Below, one piece after another: positions 10,058-54,137 of a stretch of DNA of 64,000 bases (positions are counted from its first letter, which is position 1; every line of letters begins with the position of its first letter). The DNA is from Lepidodermella squamata. Lineage: Eukaryota > Animalia > Gastrotricha. The DNA lies in the NCBI GenBank assembly GCA_047495785.1, contig JBLDXI010000017.1, positions 1,178,001-1,242,000 of the forward strand. Reading direction: 5' to 3'. The position numbers and the translations under genes are program-made. Below the pieces are notes generated by a model. The model searched no databases and had not been told where the DNA came from. It was given only the letters and a program-made list of their open reading frames with translations.

Positions 10058-10582
10058 ACATTTTTTCAAATAAAGTGCGCTCCACAAATTGTCTATTTAG
10101 CCAATTTTTTGGATACTCAGTTCTACAACATAGGTATACTGGAGGCATTGTTTGTTTCTCTCTATGTTTTCGACGTGTTTTTTTCGCGCACCAAGGAAAC
10201 TGTATCGGCTTTGCATTTTTACTGCGACACTGGCGGCTTGAAAAAATTGTCTGCGCCACGCATGTCAAAATGCACGCTCAAACTTATGGATAAAAATACT
10301 GCTATTAATATTAGTATAGATGAACCAGTTTTACCGCTGCGCGTGCTCTAAAAAACTGGGTTTCACGTTTACGCTTATTGATTACTGAGGCGAAAAATTC
10401 CTCACTGAGGCGAAAGCGTGGTTATAAGGTATACTGTATTCGAATGTTTTCACATGTTTTGGTTCTCTCTAGACACCATTGATCCAGCCATGTGACCTGT
10501 TATTTTCTTCATATTTCGCGCCTGTCGCTGCCAAAGTTGATTTATTTCGATCCTTTTTACAATATCATACAAGTAGCCCTCG

Positions 10583-34444: not shown

Positions 34445-35260
34445 ATGTATCAAAACTTGCCGGCCCAAAAAAGTCCCATTGTTTATGATAATGTCCCAAT
34501 GATGGGCAATCGTGCGGTTGGTCTTTGGCACGTTGCCAAGCGTCAAGCTGGAACTGTGGTCGACGAGGGCCAAGTCGGAGTTTCTCATCACATTTCCCAC
34601 ATTTTATGGGACTTGCACACAGCGAAGGCTTCAGATAACAGCCAACCACTAAAAAAATCGACATACGTCACGATTTTACCACCGACTGGCAACCCGACTA
34701 CAACGATATTCGTGCCGAAAGTCAGCCCTGTCGGAATTTTGCGGACAAAATCAAGCCGAGTTGCGCCTCAACAAGAAGTCCCGTTTGTTGTAGTCGCCCC
34801 GCCATTGAAATCGAAGTAGGTGATAGTAAAAAACGCAGTTTATTGACTCGAATTTATCGAATTTCCAGAGATGGCGAGGCTATTTACGAGGATTTGCCAA
34901 ACACTGAGCCCTTGATTGAGCTCTTACCTAGAATATCAATGGCGGTGCTAGCCAGAATAATGACAACAATCTCATTGCTATCCTGCTGCGTTTGCTTCAG
35001 CCTTCCAGCGGCATTTATGGCGTGGCTACCCGCAAAAAACAGGTACATTTTGAATTGTGAAAAGTCATTAAAAATTCACGAATTTTTCCAGGTGTGCGAA
35101 TTACAAATGTTCAATAACGCTGAGTTTCCTATCAATTATATTCAGCATTGGGTTCACTGTCATATTCGCGTATTTTTGGTTCGTTTTTGGGCCGATGATA
35201 AAAATTCAAAGACGCCAGATGGGCGAATATCGCACAGCCCCTGTTGCTAATTACACTTGA
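34445..35260 (+). CDS. Dispanin/CD225-like membrane protein, paralog a (divergent)
   Basis: Introns 34816-34868 and 35043-35091; LARIMTTISLLSCCVCFSLPAAFMAW...YKCSITLSFLSII two-helix domain. Confidence 0.7.
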
Positions 35261-35297
35261 ATCGAGTAAAATTTCGTTCGTTTTCAGCATTCATCTT

Positions 35298-36109
35298 TCA
35301 TTCTAAGGTGGTTGCGTTGTCACTAGACGGCGTAGTAGCTGTAGACGAGCTAGTCCATTGTGTCATGTTCCGCAACTTCAAATCAAGCAGACCGTATCCT
35401 TTAGCCAGCTGATTTATGTATTGATGCAGGTAGGCCACCGAAACTAAGGAATATCCGATCAAAGCGATGGTAATAACCATCCCCACGAAAATTGCGACCA
35501 TTGACAAAGCGATCGAAATTTTATAATGACTCCTAATATGGTTAAAACGTGGTTTCATAAGTTGATGATTGGAAGGATTCTCACTTGTTTTCAGACTTTC
35601 GAAAAGCTAAAACCATCGCGGGTATTGCAAGCCAAACTTGCCCGAAGCACATTAAGGCTATGAATGACATAGGCCGGGCGACATAAGCTTCTGCATCAAC
35701 TTCCTTACGACTTGGTATAAAGGTCTTATTACTCGGAATCGATACGAATTGCAAACTAGAAAGAAGCATAATGTTGCGAAGATTGATAATACAGCCAAAA
35801 TGTTTACCTAGAGTTCTTTGCTAGTTCACCGACTGGCGATTGCTCGGGAATGTAAAACGGGTGTAGAGGTATGTCGCTTCCTACATCCGAATGTCCTGAA
35901 TTTGGCAGTTCTGAAGATTCATCAACACCCGGAAGAGGAATCATCGAGTGGAATTCAACATTTCGAGAATAACCAGCCGAACTTGCGACTACCACAGTGG
36001 TTGGGCTCCTAATCTCCGCAGATTTCTCTCGAGTTAGGCTATGCTTTGGTCTTTCAAGAGCCGATGAACGGACTCCCTGAGCATTGATAGAACTTTCACG
36101 ATAAAACAT
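35298..36109 (-). CDS. Dispanin/CD225-like membrane protein, paralog b
   Basis: Three exons; EAYVARPMSFIALMCFGQVWLAIPAMVLAF...YKISIALSMVAIFVG. Confidence 0.75.
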
Positions 36110-36307
36110 TTACTGATACTTGTTGGCAGCAAACTAACAGAGTGATAGATAACATAAAATTCTCCGAGCATCTGTTTATCAATTATTTATCAGATTGGAT
36201 CTCGAACTGTCGCCGAGTTACAAGAGAAACTCGTATTTTTCAATAATCAAACACAAAACTAAGTGCCTCATGTCATTTCAGTGGATTGGAGGATAATATT
36301 TTGAGGC

Positions 36308-36938
36308 TTATCCTGAATATCCGTTATAGTTATATCCGCCGGAATAGCTGCTGTAGCTATGAACAGGTGTCACAAGTCCAAATGTCATTATGATCAAAGA
36401 CACGACCATCCCAAAAGTTATAGCCGTAAGTGACAACGCGATGGAAACCTCATAGAATCTCTTAGGCTTGTATCTTTGGTAGGCCATGACAATAGCTGGT
36501 ATCGAAAACCACAGCTGCAGCCAACAGAACAGCGAAATTATTGACAGTGGTCTGGCTACAATAGCCTCAAGTGGTTCATTGATTTGATTTCGAACTACAA
36601 ACTGCTGCTGACCATTGTTGTCGATTGCTATAAATGCCATGGGCGTTACAATAGGCGTTGGTTGTGGCTGATGGTTACTGAAGGTCACATCAGTAAGAGT
36701 CAAACAGGTCAGAGATAACCTACCTCATCGTATTGAGCGAAAAGTTATCGTTCCCAGAAATAGATATCACAGCGGTATTCCCAGCAAGAATGGCAGGCTG
36801 CTGCTGTTGCATGTATGGCGCAGTTGCATTTGCATTGAAGGCAGCATTGTAAGCCGGCTGAGGATCATGTCTAGCGGCTGCAGAACTCGGTACCTGGGGA
36901 TAAATTCCGTTGTAACCAGGCGAGGCAGAAGCTGCCAT
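36308..36938 (-). CDS. Dispanin/CD225-like membrane protein, paralog c
   Basis: Two exons; P/Q-rich N-terminus, EPLEAIVARPLSIISLFCWLQLWFSIPAIVMAY...SIALSLTAITFG. Confidence 0.8.
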
Positions 36939-37186
36939 TATGATGCGTCAAGGGGAAAGTTTCTGGCAATGCAAAACCACACCTTGCGTTCTTTCATCCA
37001 ATACGCCGCATCTTACCTCTTTTAGGGTGAGCATTGCCCAATCAATAAACGCATCTATTCTCATGTTTTATTCTGATCACTTAAAGCTTAAACATTGCCT
37101 ACTTTTATATCAGAACCGATTGCAACAAAACCTGAAGCAGAAGTATCCATGTCTTTCATGTCCCTTTGCCCTGCGATTTATTTACC

Positions 37187-37988
37187 CTAAACTCGATTCG
37201 CCACAGCAGAAGCTGAGATCATCCATACTCCTGAGTCATTATAAGTTGGCGAAGTACCATAATAAGTGACATAATTTGTTTCAGGGTAATAGTAGCTCTT
37301 CGTCGGGTTATAATTCCCATAATTGTTGTAGTAATCCGAATAGTAGTAACCGTTACGGTAGTAGTAATTATCCGGCAACACCAGACCGCAAATCAGCATA
37401 ACCAGCGTTACCAACATTCCAAAAGCGATTGCCGTGATCGAAAGTGCAATCGAAGCGTTGTAGTATCGCTTCGACTTGTACTTCTGATAAGCCATCACAA
37501 TTGCTGGGATCGAAAACCAGAGTTGAAGCCAGCAGAACAATGAAATGATTGACAACGGCCGAGCTGCAGCTGCCTCCATAGGTTCCATTAGAGAGTTTCC
37601 AATCATGAATTGCTGCTGGTTGTTGGCCCCATTGACAGCGAATAAAGTTGTTGGAGTGACTACTGGCATCACCTGCTGGGGTCTGAAAATTTACAATAAG
37701 TCAACAATAGTCTCCCTTAATGATATGGAAATAGTATTACCTAGCATTGAAAGTGACCCCTTGAAGGGTTACAAATGAAGTTTGGTTGCTTGTATCGAAA
37801 GCGGGCAATGCAAAGACTGTGTTGCCTGATATCATTGGTTGCTGGGTCACCTGAGCTGTCGGGACATTGCAAACTATAACAGGCTGCTGTTCGGGTGTTG
37901 GGACAGCAGCAGCAGCTGATGAGGAGGAAGCTTGCTGGGCTACTTTTTGCATATCGGCATATTGAGGCGGAGGAGACGAGGACGCCAT
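37187..37988 (-). CDS. Dispanin/CD225-like membrane protein, paralog d
   Basis: Two exons; PPPQY N-terminus, same domain, Tyr-rich tail. An in-frame upstream ATG at 38174 is an alternative start. Confidence 0.8.
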
Positions 37989-38372
37989 TGCGTTGTAAAA
38001 TTCTTCCGTTTGCTGTGCTACTTCGGCTTCGAAGTAAGCCGTTGATTGATCAAGGTAGTCGTTTGTCTCGCAATCCGGGCAGTATCGACTGTTTTCTCGA
38101 TGTTTCTTCTGCTTGGTTTTCTTACGACGCGGTTTGTTTGATGGCAACTGTTCCCGCCTGATGAAAGCAAACATTGCTCTTTGTTTTCACAAAATCAATC
38201 GAGCGCGAATGTCGTCATTTTTTATTCAAAACACAATCGATTAGTAAAAAAACAACAGACGGTTACCAAAAACATGACTAACAGCATTTTATTTATGGAT
38301 TAAAGGTCCTTTTGTACCTGATTGTCAGGTATCGAATAAAAAAGTCCATATTTCCGTGTCGTTAAAGCGTCA

Positions 38373-39191
38373 TTAGCCTGTTGCTGAGACCGAATAGACA
38401 ACCGGCTTTGTTGTTGTAGATAGTAAAACACTCAGCAAAGTTGATCCGTTGTAACTCGAAGTTGAAGGAGGAAAAACCATGTCGTTGTCGTACAACGGCT
38501 GTCCATTCGAATCAAATCCTCCGTAAGGAACATTGTACATTGGCCTACGGTAGTAGTTGTCATTATAGTATCCGTGATAGCTGTAGTATTGAAAAGGCAT
38601 CACCATGCCGAAAATCATCATAATAAAAGCACCGATCATGCCAAGAACAATCGCCGTAATAGATAGTGCAATTGACGTTTTGTAAACAGATTTTGGCTTG
38701 TTCTTCTGGTAAGCGAACACAATTGCTGGTATGGAGAACCAAATTTGCAGGCAGCAGAACAATGAAATGATAGACAAAGGTTTAGCAACTGCTGCTTCGG
38801 CAAATTCGTGAACTTGAAATCCGGGAATATTGTTACCATAACCTCCCAGCAAAGGCTGGTTTGATGGAACAGGAATGTTGATGGTTGGAGTCATTATCGG
38901 ATAAAGCTGTTGCCCATTAGCATTGAACGAATAGCCCTGAGGAATAGCAAATGTCACGTAATTCGCGCCATTTTGGACTTGATGCTGTACATTTTGCACC
39001 GGTTGATTGCTATATGGCGTCGAACTCAGAACTCTGTTTGCTGCGGGCTGATTCGTTGCTGATAACTGACCCCCAGCAGCATCTTGATAACGCGGAGGGG
39101 GAGCTGAGTCGTTATTTGCAGCCTCGCTATTCTGAGGAGCAGGAGAAATCGCCGTTTTATTCATATTCTCTGATCCAGCAACTGAATCCAT
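38373..39191 (-). CDS. Dispanin/CD225-like membrane protein, paralog e (intronless)
   Basis: Single 272-aa ORF; PPPRY motif, KPLSIISLFCCLQIWFSIPAIVFAY...SIALSITAIVLG. Confidence 0.82.
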   Translation of the reverse strand: MDSVAGSENMNKTAISPAPQNSEAANNDSAPPPRYQDAAGGQLSATNQPAANRVLSSTPYSNQPVQNVQHQVQNGANYVTFAIPQGYSFNANGQQLYPIMTPTINIPVPSNQPLLGGYGNNIPGFQVHEFAEAAVAKPLSIISLFCCLQIWFSIPAIVFAYQKNKPKSVYKTSIALSITAIVLGMIGAFIMMIFGMVMPFQYYSYHGYYNDNYYRRPMYNVPYGGFDSNGQPLYDNDMVFPPSTSSYNGSTLLSVLLSTTTKPVVYSVSATG

Positions 39192-39850
39192 TTATTCGAA
39201 AATCTCTTTCAATGTCACTCAGCGAGGTTTTTTGTGTGTAAGATGTCTTGAATAAATAAACGAGCTCTTTTGCTAGCCTCGACTTCCCTTCTACATATGT
39301 ATAAGGTGTGTAGTATTGACAAAAAATGCGTTTGCGTAGTGTGGCTGAAATGGTATAAAAAACGCTCGTATGTGGTAGACGACAAAAATGTTGCTTCTAA
39401 TCAATATACGCGATGATTCATGGAATATACCAATGCGTGCTGCTAAAAGCTTTGTGAATTAACCACGTGAACAAGAATAGGAAATGGCGCTTCTCCAAGC
39501 TATATTTGAAAACTTGTCAAGTAAACAAATGCTGCCAGAACGGATACATTATGGGATCTGGTATAAGCTCCTATTTCAAGTTCCGCGCATCAATGAATCA
39601 GTAACAAAGATTTGGTTGATCAGACTTCTTTTATCTTTCTAACGACGAGTAGTTGCAACTGCGGAATCTTCGAAGAAGAAAGTTCGTGAAGCATGCAGAC
39701 TAAGGAAGGCTTGGTTTCTCAAATCCGAAAAATGACCTGAGTAAACAAGTCATTGTCTTCAAGAAACATTATCTCCAGAACAAACAGCATAAAAAGTACC
39801 TCATCATTGAATGAGTTTGGCCTTAATTTTGCGGACGTAATTCTGGAAAA

Positions 39851-40940
39851 ATGCCTTTGATTTATCGATTTATAACATTCGTGGCAATAATTCAAGCGTA
39901 TGCTTTGCAGGGCATTTGATCATTTCAGCGCATGTTGCTTTTCACAGCTGTATTGCCGAACAAGGTTGCTACGGAACGGGAAGGAAACGTCATTGTTTCG
40001 ATGACAGATACTACACTTTACCAAGCGATCCCTACGGCGCGGTTGCTCCAACTTACTACCTATACCGACCGACCGCTGCCAATAATGACTCATTCATTGC
40101 CATTAACTCGAGCCTCGAACTGGATTTAAGGGCCAGTTCGCCCAATCAATTGGCAGTCGTTGTCCACGGATGGGGGAGTAGATTCGGGAAACGGCCCTGG
40201 CAAAAGACGATTATGCGTAACCTTCGTAAAATGAAGCCGGATATGGAGGTGTTGTTCCTAGATTGGGAACGGGGCGCATCAGAAGTATCTTCTAATACCT
40301 GGAGCATTGGTGTAGCGCTCGTCGACTTTTTGCTTGACAATCCTCAGTGGAACGCAAGTTCTAGCCACTGCATTGGCTTCAGCATGGGCGCAGGGCTCTG
40401 TGCATCCGCTGGGAGGTACATTCGAGAGTCCAGAACGAATCAAAGAGGATGGGGCCGATTAACTCTTCTCGACCCTGCTGGCTACGACCTAAGTAAATCC
40501 AACGGCGAGTTTGTCGACGTTTCCCACAGTAAGTTTAAGGCGGCATCCGCTAAGAAAAACTTCAAATCTTTTGTCTAGCATCGGATATAAGTTGGAACCG
40601 GTACTCGATAGGCCATGCTGACTATTTTGTCGGTGGAACTCGTGAACAGCCCGGTTGCGAGTACTCCGAAACAATGGATGTTGGAACCTGCTCACACGAA
40701 CGCGCCTGTCTTTACTTTCTCGAATCAGTCATACGCCCGCCAGGTATCGGAAATTGCACTTTCACAACTTTTTGCCCCTGTACCCAAGACGAATGGGATG
40801 AAGGCGGTTGTCGATCATGCAATACGAGCCAGATTCAAACGCTCGGCTACTGGGCGAACCCAAGCCGCCGAGGCATATTCTATGGACCTGTTGCTGAATT
40901 TGCGCCCTTTTGTATCCCGGTAAAATCTGATACTCAATAA
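39851..40940 (+). CDS. Secreted pancreatic-lipase-family enzyme, phospholipase A1-like
   Basis: Introns 39898-39947 and 40529-40578 give signal peptide MPLIYRFITFVAIIQACIA, VHGW, LDW, GFSMG (Ser), LDPAG (Asp), IGHADYF..G...QPGC, CSH.RA (His). Confidence 0.9.
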
Positions 40941-40947
40941 CTGAATT

Positions 40948-41325
40948 TTATTCGCTAAAAACCCATGTGTGGTTGAAGTAGAAAAATTTTGCCACCGTAT
41001 AAATTAGCCAGAAATAAACGAGGCCGATGCCAACACCAATGGCCGTTAAGGACAAAGCTATAGATTTGCGATAAGTGGATCTGAAAAAGTTAAAGAAGAA
41101 ATCAAAGCTGGAAACCATTTCTTAAAATAAATACCGAGATTTGTTGCGTGCGAATGCAAAAATTGTCGATGGAATACTGAAGCAGATGAGGCACCAGCAG
41201 AAGATCGAAACAACTGCAAGTGGGCGGGCAACTAAAGCTTCGGGAGGTTCATGACTCGATTCTACATCCTTCTGCTCAGGTCGATTGGCTTGCTGATTTA
41301 TTGTAACAATTGCCGTATCACCCAT
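40948..41325 (-). CDS. Dispanin/CD225-like membrane protein, paralog f (minimal)
   Basis: Two exons; EPPEALVARPLAVVSIFCWCLICFSIPST...YRKSIALSLTAIGVG. Confidence 0.78.
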
Positions 41326-41435
41326 TAACTCCAAAGGTCATCATTAATTAAAAATCTAAAATTCAAAAAATAAAATTTATTTTTCTGTGAAATTATGAGT
41401 TCCTTTTTTATTGTCACATCCATTCTGATGAAAAA

Positions 41436-41775
41436 TTAGCCATGAAGCCTCGAGAGTACCATTGCTGAGAAGAGTTCGAATGAAATCCATACACTTAGAA
41501 TGGACACGAAAATCATCCCAAGAGCAATGGCCGTAATCGATAAGGCGATTGATTGACTGTATTGAGATCTATAAAAAGATAACAATAATTAATAATGGAA
41601 TCGCGAAATATTGGTATCCTTACTCGCTATGATTGCGCTTGAATGCCAAAATCGCAGCTGGAACGCTGCAGCAGAAAAATATTCCGCAAAACATGGAAAT
41701 AATTGCGAGAGGTTTCGCGACAACGGCTTCGTTAGAATCACAAGGGTCTATCTTGATTTTAACGTCGTCCGACAT
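41436..41775 (-). CDS. Dispanin/CD225-like membrane protein, paralog g (minimal; absent from ORF track)
   Basis: Manual translation MSDDVKIKIDPCDSNEAVVAKPLAIISMFCGIFFCCSVPAAILAFKRNHSE|SQYSQSIALSITAIALG, with one short intron. Confidence 0.78.
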
Positions 41776-41846
41776 TTGTTAGCCGATATTAAAGACCTAA
41801 AACTAAGTAAAAGAAACATTTCCCTAATAAAATCGTCATGAATTTT

Positions 41847-42290
41847 TCATTTATTAGGATAAATAATGGCAGGTATGATTATTCCAAATACAAATAGACC
41901 AATCGATGCTGTTGTTCCAATCGCTATCGCGACTGTCGATAGAATTATTGACTTTTTATAATTTGACCTAAAAGTTGAAAAAATTAATCAAGCGTCTATT
42001 TGATCTTTAATCACGCACCTTTTAGCACCTTTCCGGAATGCGAAAGCGATAGCTGGGACGGCAGTACATATTTGGAAGTAGCAGAAAAGGGCGACTAGAG
42101 CGAGAGGTCGAGAAATAGCTGCCTCTGGAGGTTCATTTTCAGCTACAGGTGACGCATTTTCCTCGATCAAAATAACGGCAACACCTTCGTTATTTCCGGT
42201 GGCCTTGAATGATACCACCGGCTCAGCTGATTTTTCACCTGATGCTAGTAATACTGCTGATTCTTCCACAGGCTGGGGATGCCTTTCCAT
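41847..42290 (-). CDS. Dispanin/CD225-like membrane protein, paralog h
   Basis: Two exons; EPPEAAISRPLALVALFCYFQICTAVPAIAFAF...YKKSIILSTVAIAIG. Confidence 0.78.
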
Positions 42291-42909
42291 AATAAAATGG
42301 TATAAAACTAAAAAACCTAACAGTATAAGGAGTGGTTGACACTTAATAGGTAGGAAATTTATGAATAATAAAGATGCTTTTGTTGTCTATTATTCCTATA
42401 CAAAGAATAATTCTTCGAAGATTTGTAAAAGCCATTCAGATTGTGTAAGCAGCTTTCAGCCTTCATCCTTGAGCAAAATGATGAAAGACGCCGGCGCCAT
42501 TGTTGATCATCGATGATGCGGTTTTGCCGGTGCTAAAAAACAAGAGCATATATATATATATTCGCTTCTATTACCATCATCAGGCATATGTTGTTTATAT
42601 TTACTACCGCCCGCATCGTATACGAACGACGGTATAGGTGTTTACAGTTATAGGTGGAAACTCTTGCTGAGCGGCAACATGGCCGAGCAGTTTCGCAATG
42701 GCCGTGCGTATACGTGCTTACATGCTTCGTTCATGATACTATAGCTCGTTGGTGTGTTTTTCATTAATCGAATGAAAATTCTAGTTCATAAAAATTTACG
42801 AGGCGGAAGTCGATATTAAAACAACATTAAACTGCGCGATTAAGGAGGAATTTTTATTTTAATAGGCCACACAAAAAAGTTTATTACTCGCAAAAAAGTG
42901 GACAAATTG

Positions 42910-43821
42910 TTAGATAGGGACATGTTTAAAGCCCTCAATCGTTTTCTTGTACAAATCAGAAACGCCATCAAAACGCACGGCATACGTGTATTTCACAACA
43001 GCGAAAATTTGATGCTGTTTAGTTTCCCAACCGCTAATTTGCCCGGTTTTACACGACGCCTCTAGACACCCAGCAAAGGAGCGGCATTTTTTCAAACACA
43101 GCCGCTCGTCTGAGATCGGGCGAGGTCTTACTTGTTTAACTGGTATCAGTTTTTGTTGAACAAAATTTTCCAGAATTTTTTCGAAAGAAATTTCTATAGG
43201 TTTTCGAAACAGTTGCTCAGGCACTACAACATCTTTTATCACAACGCTATTTAAAGAAGAATTAGTTATCAAATTTTCGAGACTAGTCATGTCTTCTTGA
43301 TAGGCCGGTATCAGCATTTCATTTAGACCATCGGCTCGACTTCGAATCGTGGTTTGATTGAGATCGGTTACGATATTTTTAACGAAAATTATTCGTTTGC
43401 CAAGTTCGGGATTATTCTGCTTGAAGCCGTCGACCACCTGTTGCAGGAAGGCATCGGCCAGGTCGGTGTAGACGAAAAGCAGGGCTCGAATCGGCGTGCC
43501 TTTGATAAAATCGAAGAATTTGACGTGAGTCTCGCGATCTGGGCCTTCGCTGTCGAAATAGCCGGGAATTTCGACGACGTAGTCGGCATTATTCCAAGCA
43601 CGGCGAGTCGTTACACGAGTGGTCACCTTGTAGTCACCGCTGCCTTCTGGGATTTCGAGCTGGCCGGCGGCTTTCAGGCGATTCGCGATGTAAGATTTGC
43701 CGACGCCTGTTTGGCCGAATAGAATTATGTAGCCGGTCTTTTTCTCGATGAATCTCGAATTCGCGAACATCAAAGATGTCAAGATTGACATCAGAAGAGG
43801 CAGCAAGGAATAGGAATTCAT
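42910..43821 (-). CDS. AIG1/GIMAP-like P-loop GTPase with predicted signal peptide, copy 1
   Basis: Intronless 303 aa; hydrophobic N-terminus; IILFGQTGVGKSYIANRL (G1), VTT (G2), VVEIPGYFDS (G3 variant), IRALLFV. Confidence 0.75.
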   Translation of the reverse strand: MNSYSLLPLLMSILTSLMFANSRFIEKKTGYIILFGQTGVGKSYIANRLKAAGQLEIPEGSGDYKVTTRVTTRRAWNNADYVVEIPGYFDSEGPDRETHVKFFDFIKGTPIRALLFVYTDLADAFLQQVVDGFKQNNPELGKRIIFVKNIVTDLNQTTIRSRADGLNEMLIPAYQEDMTSLENLITNSSLNSVVIKDVVVPEQLFRKPIEISFEKILENFVQQKLIPVKQVRPRPISDERLCLKKCRSFAGCLEASCKTGQISGWETKQHQIFAVVKYTYAVRFDGVSDLYKKTIEGFKHVPI

Positions 43822-44500
43822 CGTGAAAATTCAGTTCGGAACGAAAACCCTATAGAAAGTAAATAAAATTATATTATAGGTCAAGCAATCCAAAAAAATT
43901 GAGATTCCTTTGCTAAATTTTCCCATTTTTTTCCTAAAAATCTAACATCTTTAATTATCGAATTATTATTTATAAAATTCGATTTTATATTATCGAAATC
44001 GATAAACCGAAATCGATATCGGCTCTAAAGTAAGGCTCGTAAACTGACCCCTTACTGAATTCTCCTGAATCATTGGAAAAATCGCGTTCTGAAAGTGAAG
44101 ACCAGGCCTTATACTGAAAATAGCGGAGAATTTCAGGGTAATTTATTGATTTTTTGAACTAATCGTGATATTCCGGAAAATTCGTGTCTACAAAATTATT
44201 GGAAAATTACAATTTTGTTCAAGTTTGCGTTTAGTGTCAAGTCTTGAAATTTGGCTCCGCAGCAGGCAATTTTTTCGGCTAAAAGAAATTATGTTTTTTA
44301 CCTTGAATCTGATCGTCAGCAGACGAAACAAACCAGTTTAAAATTCTCTCTGCGAGCTTCTATAAAACCTATAATAAAAATATCAAAAATTATCGATTTT
44401 AATAGGTCGTCAGTTTTATTGTTTAGACCCGAGTATGGCAACATATCATTAAAATTATTTATAAATCAATAGGTAGCAGCGTTTTAGCATCATTTATCCG

Positions 44501-45451
44501 TCACTCGACCTTGGCGTCCTTAAACGCCACATGAGTTTTCGCATAGACATCGGCAACCCCATCAAATCGCGTCGCATACGTGTATTTAACTGTTTCAAAC
44601 ACGCGATATCGCCTCTGAACCGGTTCATCGGACGCAACTGTTTGCCATGTCGTCAAACACGTTTCATCGACCGGCTTTATCAGCAGTTGAATCACCTGGC
44701 TAGCTGCTTGAATAGCCTGCATCGCTGCCTGAGTATCACGGGTCGACCGCGTACATGATTTCACCGGAACAGCCTTTCGAACCAGCTCGATTTTAGTCTT
44801 CAGCTCTTCTTTCAGGAAAATTTCAGCGATTTCTTCACGAATAATTTGCGGAGGGTAGGGGAAAAGCGATATTGGAACCATTAGACGGCTAATTTGAACC
44901 GGCTTCAAGTCCGAAATAGCAGATCTTAGCACGGTAAAATTTTCCTGGTGCAGCTTGATGTTGACCTTCGAGAAGCCTTCGAACTTGGTCATTTCCGCCA
45001 GCTTAGGATTGAGGACTTTATTTTTCACTAAAATAATGTTCGGACCCAGTTCGCTGCTGTTGAAGGCTGTCAAAGCTTGTTGCATGAATTTATCGACCCG
45101 GCGCGTGAAAACGAACAGCAAAGCTCGGACATAATGATTTTTGAGAAAATCAATGAATTTGACCTGATTAACGCGATCCTGCTTTTCGGTATCGAAATAA
45201 CCCGGAAATTCGATCACCAGGCTATTGAAGTCCCAAGCCGAGGCGACTACAGCTTTTTTCGTGACAGATTTGTCGCTTGAACCTTCGATATAGGTCGGTT
45301 TAGAGGACATTGCAGCCAGGCGATTTGCGATGTAGCTTTTGCCAGTACCTGTTTGACCGAACAGCACGATGTAACTTTGCTGCCGCCGAACAAGATCCGA
45401 TGCGCCGGCTGAAGAGAAAATTGCCGCGCAACAAATTAAAATAATTTTCAT
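44501..45451 (-). CDS. AIG1/GIMAP-like P-loop GTPase with predicted signal peptide, copy 2
   Basis: Intronless 316 aa; MKIILICCAAIFSSAGA leader; GQTGTGKS, SVT, VIEFPGYFDT; shares C-terminal VKYTYAxRFDGVxDxY with copy 1. Confidence 0.75.
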   Translation of the reverse strand: MKIILICCAAIFSSAGASDLVRRQQSYIVLFGQTGTGKSYIANRLAAMSSKPTYIEGSSDKSVTKKAVVASAWDFNSLVIEFPGYFDTEKQDRVNQVKFIDFLKNHYVRALLFVFTRRVDKFMQQALTAFNSSELGPNIILVKNKVLNPKLAEMTKFEGFSKVNIKLHQENFTVLRSAISDLKPVQISRLMVPISLFPYPPQIIREEIAEIFLKEELKTKIELVRKAVPVKSCTRSTRDTQAAMQAIQAASQVIQLLIKPVDETCLTTWQTVASDEPVQRRYRVFETVKYTYATRFDGVADVYAKTHVAFKDAKVE

Positions 45452-45818
45452 TTAACGTGGCCGATTTTACTGAAATGAAGGCTTGAAAAACTCTAAAATT
45501 TGTTGACATTTGATGAATAAAAACTCCAAATTTCTGTTCTGCGATGAAAAGAGTTTTCGCGCCAAACTCAAAAGCTAACAGGTGGCTCTTTGTCCGCTCC
45601 CAATCGCTGTCCTTATGAAATTGAAATCCGCAAATAGCTTTAGCGTGTAATTATTGCCGGACGCCTCTTCTAATTAATAATTTAAATTTTTTTATTTTAT
45701 CCAATAAAATATCTTTATCGTTTTTAGAGCAAAGAGCATTTTCCAATTTTACCTCGAATTTTCTAGTCTTTTAATTTCAGCATTTAGAATCAACGGATTC
45801 AAATACCACTGGTTTTAC

Positions 45819-46489
45819 TCAGTGCCGTGAATGGTCTAAGTAATAGGATGGAGGCCTGCGTAGAGGAAGAGCCAGTCCAGCGATTATTAACATGAATGCA
45901 ATTAGCATGCCAATAATTATGGCTGTCAAAGACAGCGCGATGGATTTCTTGTAATTCGCCCTCGGTTTCCCACGCCTGCAAGCCATGACCAACGCCGGAA
46001 TAGCGAACCAGCATTGGCACCAGCAGAAAAGGGAAATTATACCGAGAGCACGGGATAGCGGCGCCTCGGCTGGCTCGCTCGCCCCATTTTCAGGGTCGTC
46101 ATTTCCAGTAAGATTCCGAGCGAAATTTTGCATAGATATTGGAATTGCTATCGGAAACATTTGCTGGGACCTAAAAATAAAGATGAAAAATTTCCAAATT
46201 TTAAGGTGGACTAGAACTGTATTTACGATGCGTTGAATGAAAATCCTGAGGTTTGAGTTGTCAAGAGAGGCGCATTATCAATAGCCGGATTTGTTGTTGA
46301 GATGCCGAAATTTTGGAAACTCTGCAAGGGCTGTTGATTGAGCTGGTGAATCTGATGCGGGGTGGTGCTTGAAAGCTGGCGCAGTGGGACTATAGTGCCC
46401 GGTCGCGGCTGATAAGCCGGTGGGGCCAGGTTTGGTGCGCCTTGACCCGGTGGCTCGGTAGCTGCTGACTTGTCATCTCTCGAATCCAT
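45819..46489 (-). CDS. Dispanin/CD225-like membrane protein, paralog i
   Basis: Two exons; PPAY motif; EPAEAPLSRALGIISLFCWCQCWFAIPALVMAC...YKKSIALSLTAIIIG. Confidence 0.8.
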
Positions 46490-47005
46490 ATTTTTAACAA
46501 ATGAAACTCGCAAAGTAAAACTCGCCACTGGCCTATTCCTCTTTTTGTTACCTCTGCATTGTCTCAATAAAAGGCCGCATAAAGGCCCGTTTATCCACGT
46601 GCGCGTTAGTAATTTCGTTTATATTGCGTCTTACTCGTTTCTCAATTTTATTGTTTGGTTTTTTGCCCCTGCCGAGCATTGTTGCTGTGCTTGACTTAGT
46701 CATTAGCGAAACGTCGCTTTTCCCCATCAACATGAAATATTACCTGTGAGGGAACAATAAAAACAGACGATTCAAGAAATAGATACAGTACTATAATGAT
46801 GTATGCGATTGCTGATTTCCCATAAACAGATAAAAATACACCTCGTGATAATTACTGCGTACTTACATTCCGGTGGATTTATGGTATATGAAAATCTTAT
46901 GCTTACGCCTTTCTTTCCAAGTAAATTAGTACCCCGGTGTTTCTGATAATAACGAGCAATGCCGGCGCAGCTGAATAGCCCGCCCACGCGCTGATGTGCG
47001 TACCA

Positions 47006-47077
47006 TCCCTGATGGTCTAGTGGTTAGGATTCCGCGTTCTCACCGCGGCGGCCCGGGTTCGATTCCCGGTCAGGGAA
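47006..47077 (+). tRNA. tRNA-Glu(CTC): tRNA-Glu (CTC)
   Basis: 72-nt cloverleaf TCCCTGA...TCAGGGA-A, anticodon arm CCGCG-TTCTCAC-CGCGG, GGTTCGATTCC B-box, T5 terminator. Confidence 0.97.
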
Positions 47078-47148
47078 CATTTTTCGTTGAAGGGTGGCAC
47101 AATCTGATACTATTCATAGTAATTAATTCAAACTCAGATTGTATGTAA

Positions 47149-47220
47149 TCCTTGGTAGTATAGTGGTTAGTATCCCCGCCTGTCACGCGGGAGACCAGGG
47201 TTCGATTCCCTGCCAAGGAG
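47149..47220 (+). tRNA. tRNA-Asp(GTC): tRNA-Asp (GTC)
   Basis: 72-nt cloverleaf TCCTTGG...CCAAGGA-G, anticodon loop CTGTCAC, B-box, T-run terminators. Confidence 0.97.
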
Positions 47221-47348
47221 CATCATTTTTCGTTTTTTTTTATTTTTTATTTTTTATTTTTTTTATTGTCATGAATAACCTAATGATTTGACGGAAAAGA
47301 TGACTGCTAACTTGAGAAGGGCCTCGCAACTTTTTTGAGTTTTTAAGT

Positions 47349-47577
47349 AAGATCATACTTCTTGGGATCATTGCAATATTCTGCTCTGCCCCAACGTCAG
47401 CCTCATCTGACGACAAACCCAAACCGCGATGACGAGGCGTGGTGACTGGTCCTGAGCGCGAACTTGGCCTCACTTGGTCGGCACCAGCCGATCTTGTGGG
47501 CCGTTGATGAACGTTCCGGGCTGGTGACTCTTTAATTAGGGCCACTTCCGGAGGGATCAGTCGCTTTCAGAGCGGCT
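47349..47577 (+). ncRNA. U3: U3 snoRNA
   Basis: Begins AAGA; box A' TACTT 47356, box A GGATCATT 47365, box C' GATGACGA 47428, box B GAGCGCGAAC 47454, box C TGATGA 47505, box D variant CAGA 47568. Terminal stem CCGC/GCGG; central stem GTGACTGGTCCT/GGGATCAGTCGC. Confidence 0.88.
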
Positions 47578-48243
47578 TTTTTTTGTAAGAAAAAAATTTA
47601 AAACGTGTTATGTTGACCTCATTCAATCATACACTGCAATAAAAACATAATCCGGTTTGGTTAAGGTTGAGTAATTAAGAGCTTTTGTTGGTTATATAGT
47701 CATCTCACGCGATATCGTGATACCTCTCTCTGTTAGCAAAAAAATGCGTGTGACACAAGTGGGTGATGATGATGATGCTGCTGGAGCCGGGTGATGAATG
47801 CGTGTAACTTGTTGTATATAACGAGCACACTTGAGCAATATAACAACATGAGAAAAAAAGAACCGGTGTCGCGCGTGCTGCGCTTTTTTACGCCGCCACC
47901 TTCAGCAGCACTGCGGTTACAGCTTTTATACATCAAGCACGCGATGACGCGAAATAAAACACAAGAAACACGTTGAAGGCGTGCATTTATTTATACAGGG
48001 CAGGTAAATTTCACGCGCGCCGAAATGTATTCAAAAAGGCGACTTTCCCTTCAATATATAAAAAGCTAGAGATAATAAGGATGATAACAACAAGAAAATA
48101 ATCCTCTCAATATAATTTCTATTAATTGCTTTAAAGTCCTTTCTGAGCGAAAAATTCTTTCATGTTCCATAATGTTCGCTCTTGATAATTTATGGTTTAT
48201 TTTTCCTTGAGTGTCAAGTGTACTTGGGCGAGATTTAATTAAA

Positions 48244-49334
48244 ATGTCGTCGTCCGAGTCTGACTACATCAACGGCCAGCAGCCGCAACAGGTCAGTTTC
48301 GCTATTTCAGCACGGCGGTCCTTAGGACACCACAGCGGCGTGGTTTTACTGCCGAGTATGGACGGAGCAGAAATGTCCTTAATCGACGACGGCAATCCTT
48401 CCCACAACAGCCAGCAACAGCAACAACAGCAAGCGATAGCAGCCAATAATAATGGCTACATATCGTCATCGAACACAACAGCTACGACCTCGGCGAGTAA
48501 TTCGAGTGGAAGCAATAACGTGCCGCTGATAAAGCCTCCGATCTTCCCGCCCGCGCCGCCGGCTTTGACAATCAACAACCCTGTGTTGTACCAGGCTATC
48601 ATGCGACAACAACAGGCGATTGAAGCTGAGCAGTACCATCGGCAACAACAGCAGCAGTCGACATTCTATCCGGCTAATCATGGCGCCGCGACATTGACAA
48701 GATACCATAAGCAACAATCTCAGATTGAACGGGAACCGTTCCTGCCTCCAAACTCGCCAATTACGATGGGACAACAGCCTCAGTTCTACAATGAATACGC
48801 AAGGTGATTTTTTATTTTTGCTATAATTTAGTTCAACTTTTTCGATAGTTTCAAGCGGCCATCAAAAGCTGTCGAAGTGGAGTACGGCATGCATAGTGCT
48901 CCGATGTATGCTTCCAACCGTCAATTGTCTTACATGAAGGAGCCTCAACGTAGCAACTCGCCCGATAAACAAGAGCCTCCTCAACAGCCGGCTGAAGCTG
49001 CCGTAGCTAAACCTCTATCAGTAATAGCTTGCTTCTTCTGTTGCCAATTCTGGTTCTCCTTACCTGCTCTGGTGCTGGCCTACCGTAAGAATGGATCAAA
49101 GTGAGTTCTTATTACCATTAAAAAGTCTTATAGTATATACCTTCTCTATCTTGCAGATCGAGTTACAAATGTTCTATCGGCCTCAGTGTTACAGTCATTG
49201 TTTTCGGCATTTGCTTTTCACTTGGGGCAATCATCGGTGCTTGTGTCTATCTGGCCCACGGCGAGAAAATTCGAGATATCTGGGACCAAATCTTCGCGGG
49301 CCTTTCAGCACAAACAAAAGCTGGCGGAAGATAA
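48244..49334 (+). CDS. Dispanin/CD225-like membrane protein, paralog j (long Q/P-rich N-terminus)
   Basis: Introns 48804-48848 and 49101-49156; QPAEAAVAKPLSVIACFFCCQFWFSLPALVLAY...YKCSIGLSVTVIVFG. Confidence 0.8.
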
Positions 49335-49408
49335 CAAAACACTCCAATATTTTATTTTGAATCCCATATTAATCTGATCAAAAGATAATAAATGAAAGAG
49401 AAAGCCAT

Positions 49409-50590
49409 TTAGCCTCTCAACAGAACATGCAATGGGTGGTGAGATACGGTCTTACTGGCTGCGGTCTTTTTAGGGCTCAGCGGCTCGAATGGTTGACCGA
49501 GGTAACGAGCGAAAACTTCGGAGAACAGAGATTTCAACTCTTCATTCTCTTGGTCCAGAAAGGATGTAGTTCGGATGGGTCGCGCAGTCGTAAGTGAGCT
49601 ATCCTGCAGCCTCCGCAACAGAGAATCAAAGTCCATATTCATTACGTCCGAGTAAGTCCTCAGTTTCCCAGTGCTGTTGGCCATCTTTTCACTTTTAAGA
49701 TCCACGTAACTCCTCCTGATCAACGAGTCCAGGTCTTTGAATCCAAGTGAGTAATTCTGACTTAATCCCATTTTCCGAAATGCGGACGAAAACCCGGCTG
49801 AAAAGCCATGGTAAAATTTGGCTTCGGCTACTACATCGCCCTCGGAGAAGCTTTGCAGAACATGATTAGCTATCAAAGGAATAATTGCCGCATTCGATAT
49901 AACTCGCCCTCCTCGTAAGAGCACGGACTGTGTCGTTGAAGGAATAATTGAGGCTGTTGTGCCGACGGTTGTTGGAACTTCCAGGAGACCTATCAAAAAC
50001 TGTTCTAATTCTGACACTTTTTCTGACGACGAATCACGTCCGGTTACATTTGTTATCGTTGATGTTGTTGATGAAAAATTCCCAGCCTTACTTATAGCAT
50101 GAAGCGTAATGGGTATCCTCGTGGTTCGATATGTTGAACGAACGTCTTTGGTCGATAACTTCTCTTGACGAGACGAGCGCGTCGAGGCTGAAGTGGGCGG
50201 TGGTTTTGTTGTGGATGTAGTAGTCGATTTGTAGGCTAGGATTGTTTTTAAAGTCGTCGGTTGTTCTGCTTTCTTAGGAATAGGGGTACTAATAATTCGA
50301 TTTGCATGACTGCTGAATGGCACAGATTGCTGTTGCAGTTTGTACCGTGCTGCTGCATTGCCGAAAAAATTGGCAAGTCTCAGCCGTTCTTCAATAAGAC
50401 GACTGAAGTCACTAGGGCTCGTTGCGTTGCTAGCAGTAATGGTCGGCATGAACTTCTGGAATAAGGCTTCAAAACTCAACGTAGTAGATCTGTTGATTTT
50501 CTTGTAATCACCAGAGACTTTCAGGCCGAGAGCTGTCTTCCCTCCCATCAAGACAGAGAATAATGCAAAAGCTTGAAGCAATCGAACCAT
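49409..50590 (-). CDS. Secreted Ser/Thr-rich (mucin-like) orphan protein
   Basis: Intronless 393 aa; signal-peptide-like MVRLLQAFALFSVLMGGKTALG; T/S-rich core; N-glycosylation sequons. Confidence 0.7.
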   Translation of the reverse strand: MVRLLQAFALFSVLMGGKTALGLKVSGDYKKINRSTTLSFEALFQKFMPTITASNATSPSDFSRLIEERLRLANFFGNAAARYKLQQQSVPFSSHANRIISTPIPKKAEQPTTLKTILAYKSTTTSTTKPPPTSASTRSSRQEKLSTKDVRSTYRTTRIPITLHAISKAGNFSSTTSTITNVTGRDSSSEKVSELEQFLIGLLEVPTTVGTTASIIPSTTQSVLLRGGRVISNAAIIPLIANHVLQSFSEGDVVAEAKFYHGFSAGFSSAFRKMGLSQNYSLGFKDLDSLIRRSYVDLKSEKMANSTGKLRTYSDVMNMDFDSLLRRLQDSSLTTARPIRTTSFLDQENEELKSLFSEVFARYLGQPFEPLSPKKTAASKTVSHHPLHVLLRG

Positions 50591-50776
50591 TGTAGCAAAA
50601 AATAGCTGTTAAGCAAGTTTTCGAGTGAGACTTTTGTCTTTGCGTGTGATTGTGAAACAGTCTTGTTGTAGCTTTATTTTTGTCATCTTACTGAAAATTT
50701 ATCACGCAACGTTTACATACAAAGCGTTTAAAGTGTTAAGAAAATGGCATGAATGGCGTGTCAAGCCACTTGTTTA

Positions 50777-51430
50777 TTAACGGCGCCCGAACATGTTGCC
50801 AATGCGACTCAGCACACTGCCAGACGACGAGTCTGACGAACCAGATGATCCAGATGATCCACTAGACCCGCCAAATAAGTTACCTAGGTTATCCAAAATA
50901 CTGCCGCTTTTCTTGCTGTCATCTGAAGACGAACCAGATGGTGGCTGCGCTGTCGAGCCACCTTGTCGTCGAAAGGCACCAATAATGGTATCGAGAGGCC
51001 CACTTCCTGACCCGCTGGATCTGCTAGAGCTGCTGCTGCTGTTACTGCTGAAAAAGCCAGTTATCTTCGAGATAACACTCCCGAACCCACTGTCAGATCC
51101 TGAGTCAGAGCCTGACCTCTGGCCGTTGTTATTGCCGTTATTGTTGCCCAATAAAGAACTTCCGATGTTGATGATATCTGCAACATCTAGATTCTGTCCA
51201 GCTCTTGGCGTTGCCTGGCCTGCTTCAGTCGTTGTACTCGTCGAGCCCTTAGTCGGTCTTCGGTTGTTAGGCGCTGCAGTAGTAGTAGTAGTTCTCTGCG
51301 TTTGTTTCGGCGGTGGGGTGGGTGGCCAATCGCCATCGATGTCGATGTCAGCGAAAGGATCAGACTGGGCTTGAGATGTTGCTAGCAAAAAGCTGCAAAG
51401 GGCAACCAACACAACAAGTAGGGAATGCAT
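50777..51430 (-). CDS. Secreted Gly/Ser-rich protein with short amphipathic helices
   Basis: 217 aa from ATG 51430; signal peptide; Thr-rich segment; helices separated by GS linkers; ends FGRR; TATA-like element about 70 nt upstream. Confidence 0.75.
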   Translation of the reverse strand: MHSLLVVLVALCSFLLATSQAQSDPFADIDIDGDWPPTPPPKQTQRTTTTTAAPNNRRPTKGSTSTTTEAGQATPRAGQNLDVADIINIGSSLLGNNNGNNNGQRSGSDSGSDSGFGSVISKITGFFSSNSSSSSSRSSGSGSGPLDTIIGAFRRQGGSTAQPPSGSSSDDSKKSGSILDNLGNLFGGSSGSSGSSGSSDSSSGSVLSRIGNMFGRR

Positions 51431-51685
51431 GTTGAATGTAATCACAAAAGACAATGAATGAAAAACTCAACGCCAACAGCTTTCAAGACTATTGCTTTTA
51501 TAAACCCCCTCAGTCGCTCTAACACGGAATGATGAGCACGTTTTCCTCCTGCCAAAAATGTGTAGACTTAAACTGTCTTTTATACAGTGTCCTACTCTAG
51601 GCTAATCATGGGTAGTAATTACGTCGTCAATCTTTAGAAAGTGGTGTTTACTTCAAGGTAAATTCTTTGCTTTCAACTCAGCATT

Positions 51686-54137
51686 TTACAGTTTGAAGAT
51701 TCCTTGAAAAAAGTTTGCTACTGGTTTAAAAAAATCGGTAATTGTTTGTAGCACTCCACCTCCTCCTCCTCCGCTATTTGAATCGTTGTTTCCTCTCGGC
51801 CCTGGAATGGGCCCACCGCCAAGAAGACTTGCTCCAACTTCGAAAACAGAAGCAGCCGTTTCGACTGCTTTCTGATCAACACCAGGTGCCTTCCCGATTT
51901 CGCGAATTCCCATTCCAGCCAAACCGGCCCCCGCTCCTACAGCGCCCATCGGCCCACCGGAAGCGATTGGAACAGCAACTGCGGCCACTCCACCTAAAAC
52001 CTGTTTAGCGGTATTCACAGCGTTATGATCTGCGCCGGGGATCGTTTTAATGGCCTCCATTCCCATATTTACACCCTGAATAGCCAAGCCAGAGATCAGA
52101 TTTGTTGGTAAGCCTCCTGCTGAACCAGATGACGATGATGAGGATCCCGATCCCCCAGAGGAGCCTCCACCCGTCATGCCACCTAACATTGGAAGGCCCA
52201 TCGATAGAGCTCCTCCGACTACGCTTTTCGCAGTGTCCACCGCTTTCGCATCGGCTCCTGGAATACCTTTCGCAGCGTCCAAGCCCATGTTAACACCTTG
52301 ACTCGCCATACCGGAAATCATTCCCATGGGCAATCCACCGGCTGCTGATGATCCATTAGAACCACTGGATGGCGAGCCGGATGATGCTCCGCCCATCATT
52401 CCCATAATCATAGGCATCCCCATTGATAAAGCGCCGCCAATTATTGGCTGAGCTGCATTTATAGCGGCGGGATCAGCTCCAGGAATACCTTTCGCCGCCT
52501 CCATGCCCATGTTAACACCTTGAATTGCCAGACCGGAGATCATTCCCATAGGCAACCCTCCAAGTGGGGAATTTGAAGAAGACGAATTACCAGCTGTATT
52601 TTTGGAGCCAGATGATTGTTGACCAGCCATCATCCCCATGACCATCGGCATCGCTGCACCTACTATCGGTTTCGCGGCATCGACTGCGGCGGGACTGGCC
52701 CCGGGAATGGTCTTCAATACTTCCATGCCTTTGTTGAGGAGTGCATCCAGGATGCCAGCTGAAGGGGCCGAAGTAACGGCTGCGCTTGGAAAGTCTGAAA
52801 ATAAAGCGAGATAATAGGGGAAATAATCGTTAAAACTTGTTAGACATACCGGTTACCAAGTCACCTTTGAAGGGAATTCCATGCACCAAATCGTCCGTAA
52901 AAGGTTTAAAAGTTGACGTCGCTGCCTGGGATGATTTGGATGTTTGAGAGTTGTCGTTAAAGTCGTCGAGATCAATGTCAAATGGGTCTTGCTCATCTTT
53001 CTTTACAGGCTGCCTTGCCGTATCTCGACGGCGTCGGCCCAAGTTGATAAAGGCCTCCAACAAAGATGATAGCGAATCTCCCACCACGCCCATGGTTCTG
53101 CTGTCAGCACCCGCCGCGGCTCCGATGCCCCGCGTAAGCCCACCTACGCCGCTCCCAATCGCTCGACCCATTCCGTTAGCTGATCCGTTTCCAGATCTTG
53201 TCTGAGGTGCATTCAAGCTTGAAACGCCCGCTTGAAAAACAGGAGCTAGAACACCTTGAACTTTATTCAGAGTTGCATTATCAACGCCTGGCATATCAGC
53301 GGCTCCTGCCAACGCCGACAAAGCGCTTACTCCTAACATTGTGGGAATTGAGCGCTCTAGGCTGCCATTTTTTAGACCGGAGCTTGCTGCTTGAAGGCCA
53401 CTAAGAGCAGCGCCACCCACGATTCCGATTCCGATCTGCGCCTGGTTAGCAACTGTTGCGTTGGACCCGTTGCTTTTACCGGCGACTTCCGCCAGAGTCA
53501 AGGCCGAATTAACAACAGATGGAATAACTGCCCCTGCCTGGTCTAATGGCCCGTTTTCGTCTGAGGATGGGATGTACTCCCCGTCGCGATTTCGTTCTCG
53601 TCGCTGGTTGACAGCATTCCCTCTCGCTGCATTTATCACGGATCCGACAGCATTACTGACTGAACCAGCAGCCCGTTGCGAATCTCTTGCGTTAATTGTT
53701 CCGTTTGAAACGCCAGCGACAAATGACCCGAAAACATTGCCGAGAAGACCAAACGCCCCCGAGTTGTCCGTATTTTGATTTGAGTCAGCATATTGGTCAT
53801 TTGAACCACTTGGGCCCATGTCGTAGTTCGCAAGACGAGGGTCTGAAAATCCTGAAGAAGGTTTTGGTGCCGGAGCAGGTTGTTGCCTTGGTACGGGATT
53901 GGATTTTTGTGTCGTAGTTTCTGGGATCAGAATTCGTGTTCGGCGAGCCCCCTTCGTTGTAGCAGGGGTTGTTACAACAAGCTGGCCTCCTTCAGAAGCA
54001 TCATTCGCCCCGTCAATTCCATTCGATCGACGCCGATTGTTAGCTGCAGCTCCAGCAGCAGGATTGTTATTTTGGGCATGTACAACTATTAAGGTGGAAA
54101 ATGCCACCAACGATATAATAACGAATTTTGACATCAT
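51686..54137 (-). CDS. Large secreted Gly/Ala/Met-rich repeat protein (~798 aa)
   Basis: Two ORFs joined in frame by a 55-nt GT-AG intron (52795-52849); signal peptide; polybasic sites RRRS and GRRRRD; ~70-aa repeats. Confidence 0.75.

Follow-up and report, generated by a model that had tools for sequence, protein, structure and literature searches.

Ten dispanin-like genes in a gastrotrich genome, a probable old local array with lipase, P-loop GTPase-like and orphan genes as neighbours

The gastrotrich Lepidodermella squamata carries, within a stretch of 64,000 nucleotides (nt) here called the window (G000:C17:1178001-1242000), exactly ten paralogous genes for two-helix membrane proteins between 34.4 and 49.3 kb (Table 1). 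These are best read as an old, locally duplicated array of a branch of the CD225/dispanin superfamily, with a lipase gene, two P-loop GTPase-like genes and three genes for secreted orphan proteins as neighbours rather than demonstrated partners (probability about 0.68). The genome searched was an assembly of 121.2 Mb in 151 contigs, and the RNA evidence was a single low-depth run (X2), used as contigs and covering one 6-kb stretch (~41000-46600). A preliminary description of the same DNA had proposed a possible co-regulated, membrane-directed island in which secreted effectors are linked to membrane protectors or receptors. Its ten related two-helix genes were all found again, while the name "defence/secretion island" is unsupported.

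The ten dispanin-like genes and their relationship to CD225

The array was delimited by tblastn with four of the copies together with a family profile run over the open reading frame (ORF) pieces of the window, 16 of which the profile matches. Ten paralogues within 15 kb are far beyond chance, a verdict that does not extend to the thematic combination of the array with its neighbour genes. Copies 3, 4, 5 and 9, all on the minus strand and with profile E-values of ~1e-25, hold both helices within a single exon, and copies 1, 2, 6, 7, 8 and 10 are interrupted at the identical profile position 38|39 in the inter-helix loop by introns of 49-57 nt. Each exon of a multi-exon gene was used separately in searches, folds and trees. 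The alignment, together with profile matches to all ten copies, places two helices near the C-terminus, joined by a short basic loop and preceded by a variable N-terminus. Each protein runs from a variable Pro/Gln-rich N-terminus through a Cys-bearing hydrophobic helix 1, the loop and a helix 2 with a conserved Gly to a short tail rich in Tyr, Gly and Asn. Copies 3 and 4 are the same at 71% of domain positions.

Table 1. Positions of the array, its neighbours and other genes in the window (aa, amino acids; E, E-value with the family profile)
Feature	Span	Strand	Exons and domains	Support and remarks
Copy 1	34445..35250	+	N-terminal exon from ~34445; split domain 34948-35182 (helix 1 34948-35046, helix 2 35096-35182); intron ~50 nt	E 2.5e-5 and 2e-5 on halves; tblastn; most divergent
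Copy 2	35298..36109	-	36109-35808, 35755-35585, 35532-35298; split domain 35439-35694; inter-helix intron 52 nt	E 3e-8 and 4e-8; donors GTAAAC and GTGAGA, acceptors TAG, frames compatible
Copy 3	36308..36938	-	domain exon 36308-36703; unsplit domain 36359-36562; probable upstream exon 36720-36938	E 4.7e-25
Copy 4	37187..38174	-	domain exon 37187-37672; unsplit domain 37367-37573; upstream exon 37737-38174 with PPQY	E 2.3e-25
Copy 5	38373..39191	-	single 272-aa ORF; unsplit domain 38586-38795	E 8e-26; PPRY N-terminal; C-terminal tail Tyr/Asn-rich
Copy 6	40984..41334	-	two exons, intron between helices; split domain 40984-41232	E 7e-10 and 7e-7; 3' end converges on 3' end of lipase gene
Copy 7	41466..41739	-	two exons; split domain 41478-41727	E 5e-12 and 8e-7
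Copy 8	41859..42290	-	two exons; split domain 41871-42116	E 5e-6 and 4e-7; X2 contigs span 41985-42378
Copy 9	45819..46567	-	domain exon 45819-46160; unsplit domain 45861-46055; upstream exon 46223-46567 with PPAY	E 1.9e-25; X2 contigs span 45728-46515
Copy 10	48211..49300 (3' end approximate)	+	Gln-rich N-terminal exon 48211-48807; split domain 48994-49253 (helix 1 48994-49098, helix 2 49155-49253)	E 6e-11 and 8e-5
Pancreatic-type lipase	39851..40940	+	39851-39897, 39948-40528, 40579-40940	~329 aa; PF00151 on both large exons (42 and 23 bits)
GTPase-like gene 1	42910..43821	-	intronless	303 aa; MMR_HSR1 23.6 bits (cut-off 21.9)
GTPase-like gene 2	44501..45451	-	intronless	316 aa; Pfam, alignment, predicted fold
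Orphan 1	49409..50590	-		393 aa; putative signal peptide, Ser/Thr/Leu-rich, no Cys
Orphan 2	50777..51430	-		~217 aa from MHSLL; Ser/Gly-rich
Orphan 3	51686..54137	-	54137-52850, 52794-51686; intron 55 nt	5' signal peptide (putative)
689-aa ORF	54374-56443	-		directly after orphan 3 gene; charged, rich in low complexity
Rhodopsin-type receptor	18223-20021	-		
Sulfotransfer_2 carbohydrate sulfotransferase genes	150-11000	+	ORFs 150-581, 2015-2401, 2937-4209, 4968-5360, 6872-7243, 8797-9174, 10583-10987	at least five in tandem; Pfam match

According to the founding survey of the dispanins (PMC3282796), helix 1 bears a Cys motif and helix 2 a Gly, the loop between them has a GD and an A-x6-A motif, and metazoan members share an inter-helix splice site. 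With the Pfam model of the superfamily (CD225, PF04505) copy 5 scored 10.6 bits against a gathering threshold of 27.1 bits, the other window copies tested gave no match, and among 40 members from the genome CD225 was matched by four (best E 1.5e-4), tied for first place with DUF4064 and TMEM70. A wider comparison was made with a family profile of 75 positions from 42 genome members (A3), which matched 102 of 1.84 billion representative proteins, the first ~48 being clearly of the same family and from metagenome-assembled animals. Eight of the weaker matches (E 8e-7 to 7e-4) are certified CD225 proteins with 43-163 bits on PF04505, and when the A3 matches were scanned with Pfam 18 of 86 passed E 0.01 for CD225 and 17 of 86 for DUF4190. 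Aligned by hhalign with 14 CD225 domains, A3 gave a probability of 98.9% (E 1.7e-17) over 62 columns that reach from helix 1 through helix 2, and in the loop the two-helix family is 9 residues shorter than CD225. A member from a related species (P0002) came close to the Pfam threshold, with 25.6 bits on CD225 against 27.1.

In their details the proteins resemble the dispanins in several respects, the comparison being with IFITM1-3/5, PRRT2, TRARG1/TUSC5, SynDIG1, TMEM91 and PRRT1. Both have a variable, often Pro-rich N-terminus, in which a PPxY motif is common to the two-helix family and IFITM3, and two C-terminal hydrophobic helices. Helix 1 carries Cys (FCW, FCC and FCWC in the window copies, GCxCC elsewhere in the genome) and helix 2 a conserved Gly (AIxxG). 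An inter-helix intron is present in six of the ten copies and lacking in the other four, the correspondence with dispanins being drawn at the level of location in the loop. Tandem clustering is likewise a feature of the vertebrate IFITM locus. Unlike in dispanins, the loop (consensus RKxxxKxxY) is ~9 residues shorter and, in the family alignment and with hhalign, lacks the GD and A-x6-A motifs, the scores stay below the Pfam gathering threshold, and in the window subfamily a Glu replaces the Asp before helix 1.

These sequence comparisons make the two-helix family a divergent, short-loop lineage within the CD225/dispanin superfamily, one that is probably not IFITM. That it is not homologous to CD225 at all, the resemblance stemming from a shared hydrophobic-hairpin composition, is very improbable. 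Such a view could draw on the failure of every window copy to attain the Pfam threshold, on the missing loop motifs and on the weak matches to small membrane families such as TMEM70 and DUF4064, but it has to contend with certified CD225 proteins retrieved at E 8e-7 to 2e-5 from a library of 1.8 billion proteins, with the hhalign probability over both helices, with the near-threshold score of the relative's protein and with the features held in common, namely the Cys cluster, the Gly of helix 2, the intron between the helices and N-termini that are Pro-rich and carry PPxY. The preliminary label "IFITM-like" therefore holds at the level of the superfamily and no further, the copies being below the Pfam threshold and without the loop motifs, and the IFITMs (DSPA) being one of four subfamilies that arose from a vertebrate expansion (PMC3282796). 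The placement of the two-helix family implies neither an interferon system nor an antiviral role.

Two further kinds of search returned nothing beyond this. A PDB sequence search with the family profile gave chance opsin matches only (E 0.35), and word-index protein searches with copy 5, GTPase-like gene 2 and the second exon of orphan 3 gave no match; the proteins are divergent, and the collection apparently does not include the species of the window.

Age, spread and possible role of the family

Run against the genome, a profile made from the window copies gives at least 61 matches, which lie in several arrays (C15 at 4.11-4.22 Mb, C19 at 0.17-0.46 Mb, C9 and elsewhere), and 40 of these were fetched and scanned with Pfam. 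The PPxY motif is enriched in the N-terminal parts, occurring in 11 of 40 domain-bearing ORFs against 2.0 expected from shuffling, and within the window in copies 4, 5 and 9. The little-studied Gastrotricha hold a large divergent radiation of dispanin-like genes that standard Pfam annotation would overlook, which differs from the picture of a family expanded in vertebrates (PMC3282796). It extends the range over which this superfamily, relevant to antiviral restriction and vesicle fusion, is known, and its short-loop variants would be useful for structure-function work.

The two-helix family groups as a clade of its own with metagenomic invertebrate relatives. A tree of 47 domains unites the four unsplit window copies with the copies of the related species in a clade (support 98/89) that excludes all 38 other genome members, and copies 3, 4 and 5 are mutually closest; the six split copies were omitted since their exons were kept unjoined. 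A metagenome scaffold of the related species (L063) can be anchored to the window by synteny through an orthologue of the rhodopsin-type G-protein-coupled receptor (GPCR) of the window, its C-terminal exon (L063:107-508) being 94% identical over 54 residues to window 18295-18456. At least five tandem copies of the window subfamily lie ~5 kb past this receptor, after which the scaffold ends. The shared clade and the array on L063 indicate that the array predates the split of the two species and was duplicated further afterwards. Between copies, synonymous divergence (dS) has reached saturation in five of the six pairs, such that the ratio of nonsynonymous to synonymous divergence, 0.22 for the single computable pair, is uninformative on positive selection.

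Between the receptor and the array L063 also carries a divergent eEF1A-like gene (3335-4753, plus strand) with GTP_EFTU, D2, D3 and C-terminal domains, which has no counterpart at that position in the window. A 312-aa neighbour on the scaffold of the relative was tested as a homologue of the GTPase-like genes and rejected.

Tandem duplication would have begun before the split from the related species and continued after it, four copies having lost the ancestral inter-helix intron along the way. By analogy with IFITM3, PRRT2 and TRARG1 the proteins would most likely have a cytosolic N-terminus and reside in membranes of endosomes or in the plasma membrane, where they may tune vesicle fusion or sorting. 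The PPxY motifs would serve to recruit NEDD4-type ubiquitin ligases, and palmitoylation would occur on the cysteines.

The lipase, GTPase-like and orphan genes

The preliminary description had placed a secreted lipase of phospholipase A1 (PLA1) type among the ten copies, and the gene was confirmed, with a sequence that fits this type. The protein scores 42 bits on PF00151 against a cut-off of 27 bits, and its 5' mini-exon reads as a signal peptide, after which the mature N-terminus aligns with pancreatic lipase. The Ser-Asp-His triad is marked by GFSMG and LDPAG, which line up with the active-site Ser and Asp in 1lpa and LPL, and by CSHER, read from exon 3. The lid has 10 residues (PGC to CSH), the beta-9 loop ~10 residues (HT to GHADY), and in the spliced frame the protein ends ~60 residues past the catalytic His, without a PLAT domain. 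A short lid, a short beta-9 loop and the lack of a PLAT domain are the criteria for extracellular PLA1s. The sequence fits a secreted member of the pancreatic lipase family with a PLA1-type build, sharing with PS-PLA1, LIPH/LIPI and the vespid venom PLA1 the triad, the N-terminal Cys pattern, the short lid and beta-9 loop, the predicted signal peptide and the absence of PLAT, while differing from the solved lipases in being only ~20-25% identical to them.

The two GTPase-like genes, which are 37% identical to each other, belong to a set of four in the genome, the other two forming a pair on C38 (G000:C38:606000-610000). The C38 pair, unlike that of the window, has introns, and it is duplicated with identical scores at G000:C112:38700-41100, a duplicate that is probably a haplotig. 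All four proteins have a hydrophobic stretch of ~14-24 residues immediately before strand beta-1 of the P-loop. Gene 1 has a hydrophobic N-terminus, a G1 of GQTGVGKS, a G3 of EIPG and VKNIV in the place of G4; gene 2 has a signal-peptide-like N-terminus (MKIILICCAAIFSSAGA), GQTGTGKS, EFPG and VKNKV. Across the four paralogues G1 reads GQTG[TV]GKS, G3 reads E[FI]PG and the G4 place reads VKN[KI][VA] with no conserved Asp, and neither a canonical G3 (DxxG) nor the G4 specificity motif was found in their alignment.

An RALLFV segment that follows G3 may correspond to the conserved box of AIG1, which it resembles. The label "GIMAP-like" is plausible for these proteins, which share with the AIG1, GIMAP and Toc paraseptin GTPases (GIMAP2/7 and pea Toc34) the predicted TRAFAC G-domain fold, the GxxGxGKS P-loop and an arrangement in tandem pairs. 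Yet they differ from AIG1/GIMAP in the ExPG of G3, the degenerate G4, the signal-like N-termini and the AIG1 (PF04548) scores, 20.0 bits for gene 2 and 13.9 bits for gene 1, both below the cut-off of 27 bits. In the predicted fold the G domain has a pLDDT of 70-90 and the helices of the C-terminal 120 residues are of low confidence; no relatives of those 120 residues were detectable. A Foldseek search gave MnmE, Toc34, GIMAP7, GIMAP2, EngA-like, FeoB and SR-beta structures as top matches of about equal rank (E 2e-5 to 2e-4), the Atlas neighbours are AIG1 clusters at a borderline 0.92 with 168-169 shared features, and a scan of JGI metagenomes for relatives matched 230 patterns without confirming one. 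Of the earlier claim of two signal-peptide, GIMAP-like GTPases, the paralogous pair and its hydrophobic N-termini stand, and the GIMAP label lies below the AIG1 cut-off.

A signal peptide is favoured over an anchor at these N-termini because the h-regions are short in three of the four paralogues, although SR-beta-like N-terminal anchoring is possible. AIG1/GIMAP proteins are cytosolic or membrane-anchored without a signal peptide, with a coiled coil in GIMAPs, and in Biomphalaria glabrata all 91 AIG genes lack one (PMC7053062). The signal-peptide-like GTPases are the oddest component of the region, and four AIG1-like P-loop proteins with an altered G3 and cleaved signals would, should these mark a true entry into the secretory pathway, be unusual for the class.

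Three secreted orphans had been announced, a count that stands only after ORFs 52830-54137 and 51686-52726 are joined into one gene, orphan 3. The join rests on an intron and a continuous frame and not on similarity. The first ORF has a GTATGT donor 17 nt ahead of its stop, a TTTTCAG acceptor follows after 55 nt, and the frame runs on into the second, which is open for 42 codons before its ATG. Compared by BLASTP, the two halves gave no significant match. The second exon holds three ~74-aa repeats containing IPGAD and an amphipathic C-terminus, and an AF2 model of it (pLDDT 49) gives a suggestion of helix-turn-helix repeats. Orphan 2 carries three copies of a motif, GS[VI][IL]xx[IL]xx[FLM]F, outside its signal peptide, with 0.01 expected in the whole protein by shuffling. 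All three orphans are of low complexity and single-copy in the genome, and no Pfam family and no homologue was found for any of them; the Atlas matches of orphan 1 (at most 0.86, to unnamed arthropod clusters) were not used.

A segment resembling the orphan 2 motif was also noted at the end of orphan 3 (51686-51760, minus strand). One of the orphan 2 copies precedes a C-terminal GRR, and a related segment, IIGAF, precedes RR, both reminiscent of the processing sites of peptide precursors.

Linkage, expression and surroundings of the array

Were the region a co-regulated defence and secretion island of the kind outlined at the start, with dispanin-like protectors or receptors shielding the cell that makes the secreted effectors, several of its features would be in keeping with it. 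Every component is predicted to be a membrane or secretory-pathway protein, the majority of the genes share the minus strand and are set apart by short intergenic gaps, one of just two genomic loci of the GTPase family is here, and IFITM3 and PRRT2 act on membrane fusion (PMC11730294). The genome nevertheless holds no second instance of linked dispanin, lipase and GTPase genes. On C38 no dispanin-family match was found among the listed matches and no lipase-like ORF near the GTPase pair, whose neighbours, judged by eye, are ORFs resembling a voltage-gated channel, VAMP and a mitochondrial processing peptidase. The ~30 further lipase paralogue matches likewise have no listed dispanin-family match within ~35 kb, the lipase of the window being the only one that adjoins dispanin-like genes. 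Other arrays contain unrelated genes. The largest (G000:C15:4111000-4160999) has 14 dispanin-like copies in 50 kb interleaved with several Cys-loop channel genes, two AMP-binding enzyme genes and one secretin-type seven-transmembrane (7tm_2) gene, which indicates that interleaving with unrelated genes is normal for the family. Eight loci of metagenomic relatives with members of the subfamily showed no homologue of the lipase, GTPases or orphans, and the conserved linkage that the proposal called for was not seen in the contigs retrieved. X2 contigs cover copies 6, 7, 8 and 9, with zero depth over both GTPase genes, the theme was picked post hoc, and no immune role is known for non-vertebrate dispanins (PMC3282796). 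The island is accordingly unlikely, and counsels caution, as an attractive reading to which recurrence, synteny and the limited RNA lend no support.

Slightly less likely again is the co-transcription of the minus-strand genes, or of the subsets 8-7-6 and 5-4-3-2, as spliced-leader operons, which would explain linkage without a shared function. The gaps of 100-250 nt between copies 8, 7 and 6 and between copies 5, 4, 3 and 2 suit such a reading, whereas the gaps around the GTPase genes are 370-680 nt, these genes have zero X2 depth despite covered genes on both sides, and no leader sequence was identified on the transcripts here. Less probable than either is that the locus forms a co-expressed module belonging to a single secretory or epidermal cell type. 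Signal-peptide AIG1-like NTPases would then act together with PLA1 and amphipathic secreted proteins, and the dispanin-like array would protect or organise the membranes of the producing cell; if true, AIG1-like NTPases would work within the secretory pathway or extracellularly, which would be unprecedented for the class.

An old local array with incidental neighbours accounts best for these observations, and several points weigh against it. L063, the sole likely orthologous scaffold, ends inside the array, so the comparison of linkage stops there. The RNA coverage comes from 6 kb only, a stretch without the lipase and the secreted genes, and contigs show presence and not absence or level, such that X2 is only weak evidence for unequal expression. 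The hhalign comparison is not fully independent, since its CD225 sequences were chosen via the family profile, and topology, palmitoylation and NEDD4 binding are carried over from other dispanins. If loci were placed uniformly at random, one of about a dozen lipase loci and one of only two GTPase loci would be somewhat unlikely to fall together in one 15-kb array, an argument that keeps a shared chromatin or expression domain in play and leaves a little weight for the island and, to a slightly smaller degree, for the operons.

That X2 contains RNA follows from a contig in which the 55-nt intron of copy 7 (GT..AG) is removed, the joint 41568/41624 omitting 55 nt that end CT..AC on the plus strand. 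Of the aligned contigs 20 of 26 match the window at 99% identity or more. Over the dispanin-like genes the contigs mostly show hairpin-like joints between opposite strands, and one has a poly-A loose end at 41506, within an exon; both are probably artefacts of library or assembly.

Vertebrate dispanins include auxiliary subunits of AMPA receptors, and in this light the Cys-loop channel genes beside the dispanin-like copies on C15 may deserve attention.

The genes of the window are tightly packed, with introns of ~50 nt. For the 689-aa ORF no Pfam family was found. Every gene of the Sulfotransfer_2 array has an MKLIxYEIALL-type anchor exon at the N-terminus, and elsewhere in the window lie a leucine-rich-repeat gene, a gamma-glutamyltranspeptidase gene and a Sulfotransfer_1 (HS3ST-like) gene, the neighbourhood as a whole being ordinary for a metazoan genome.

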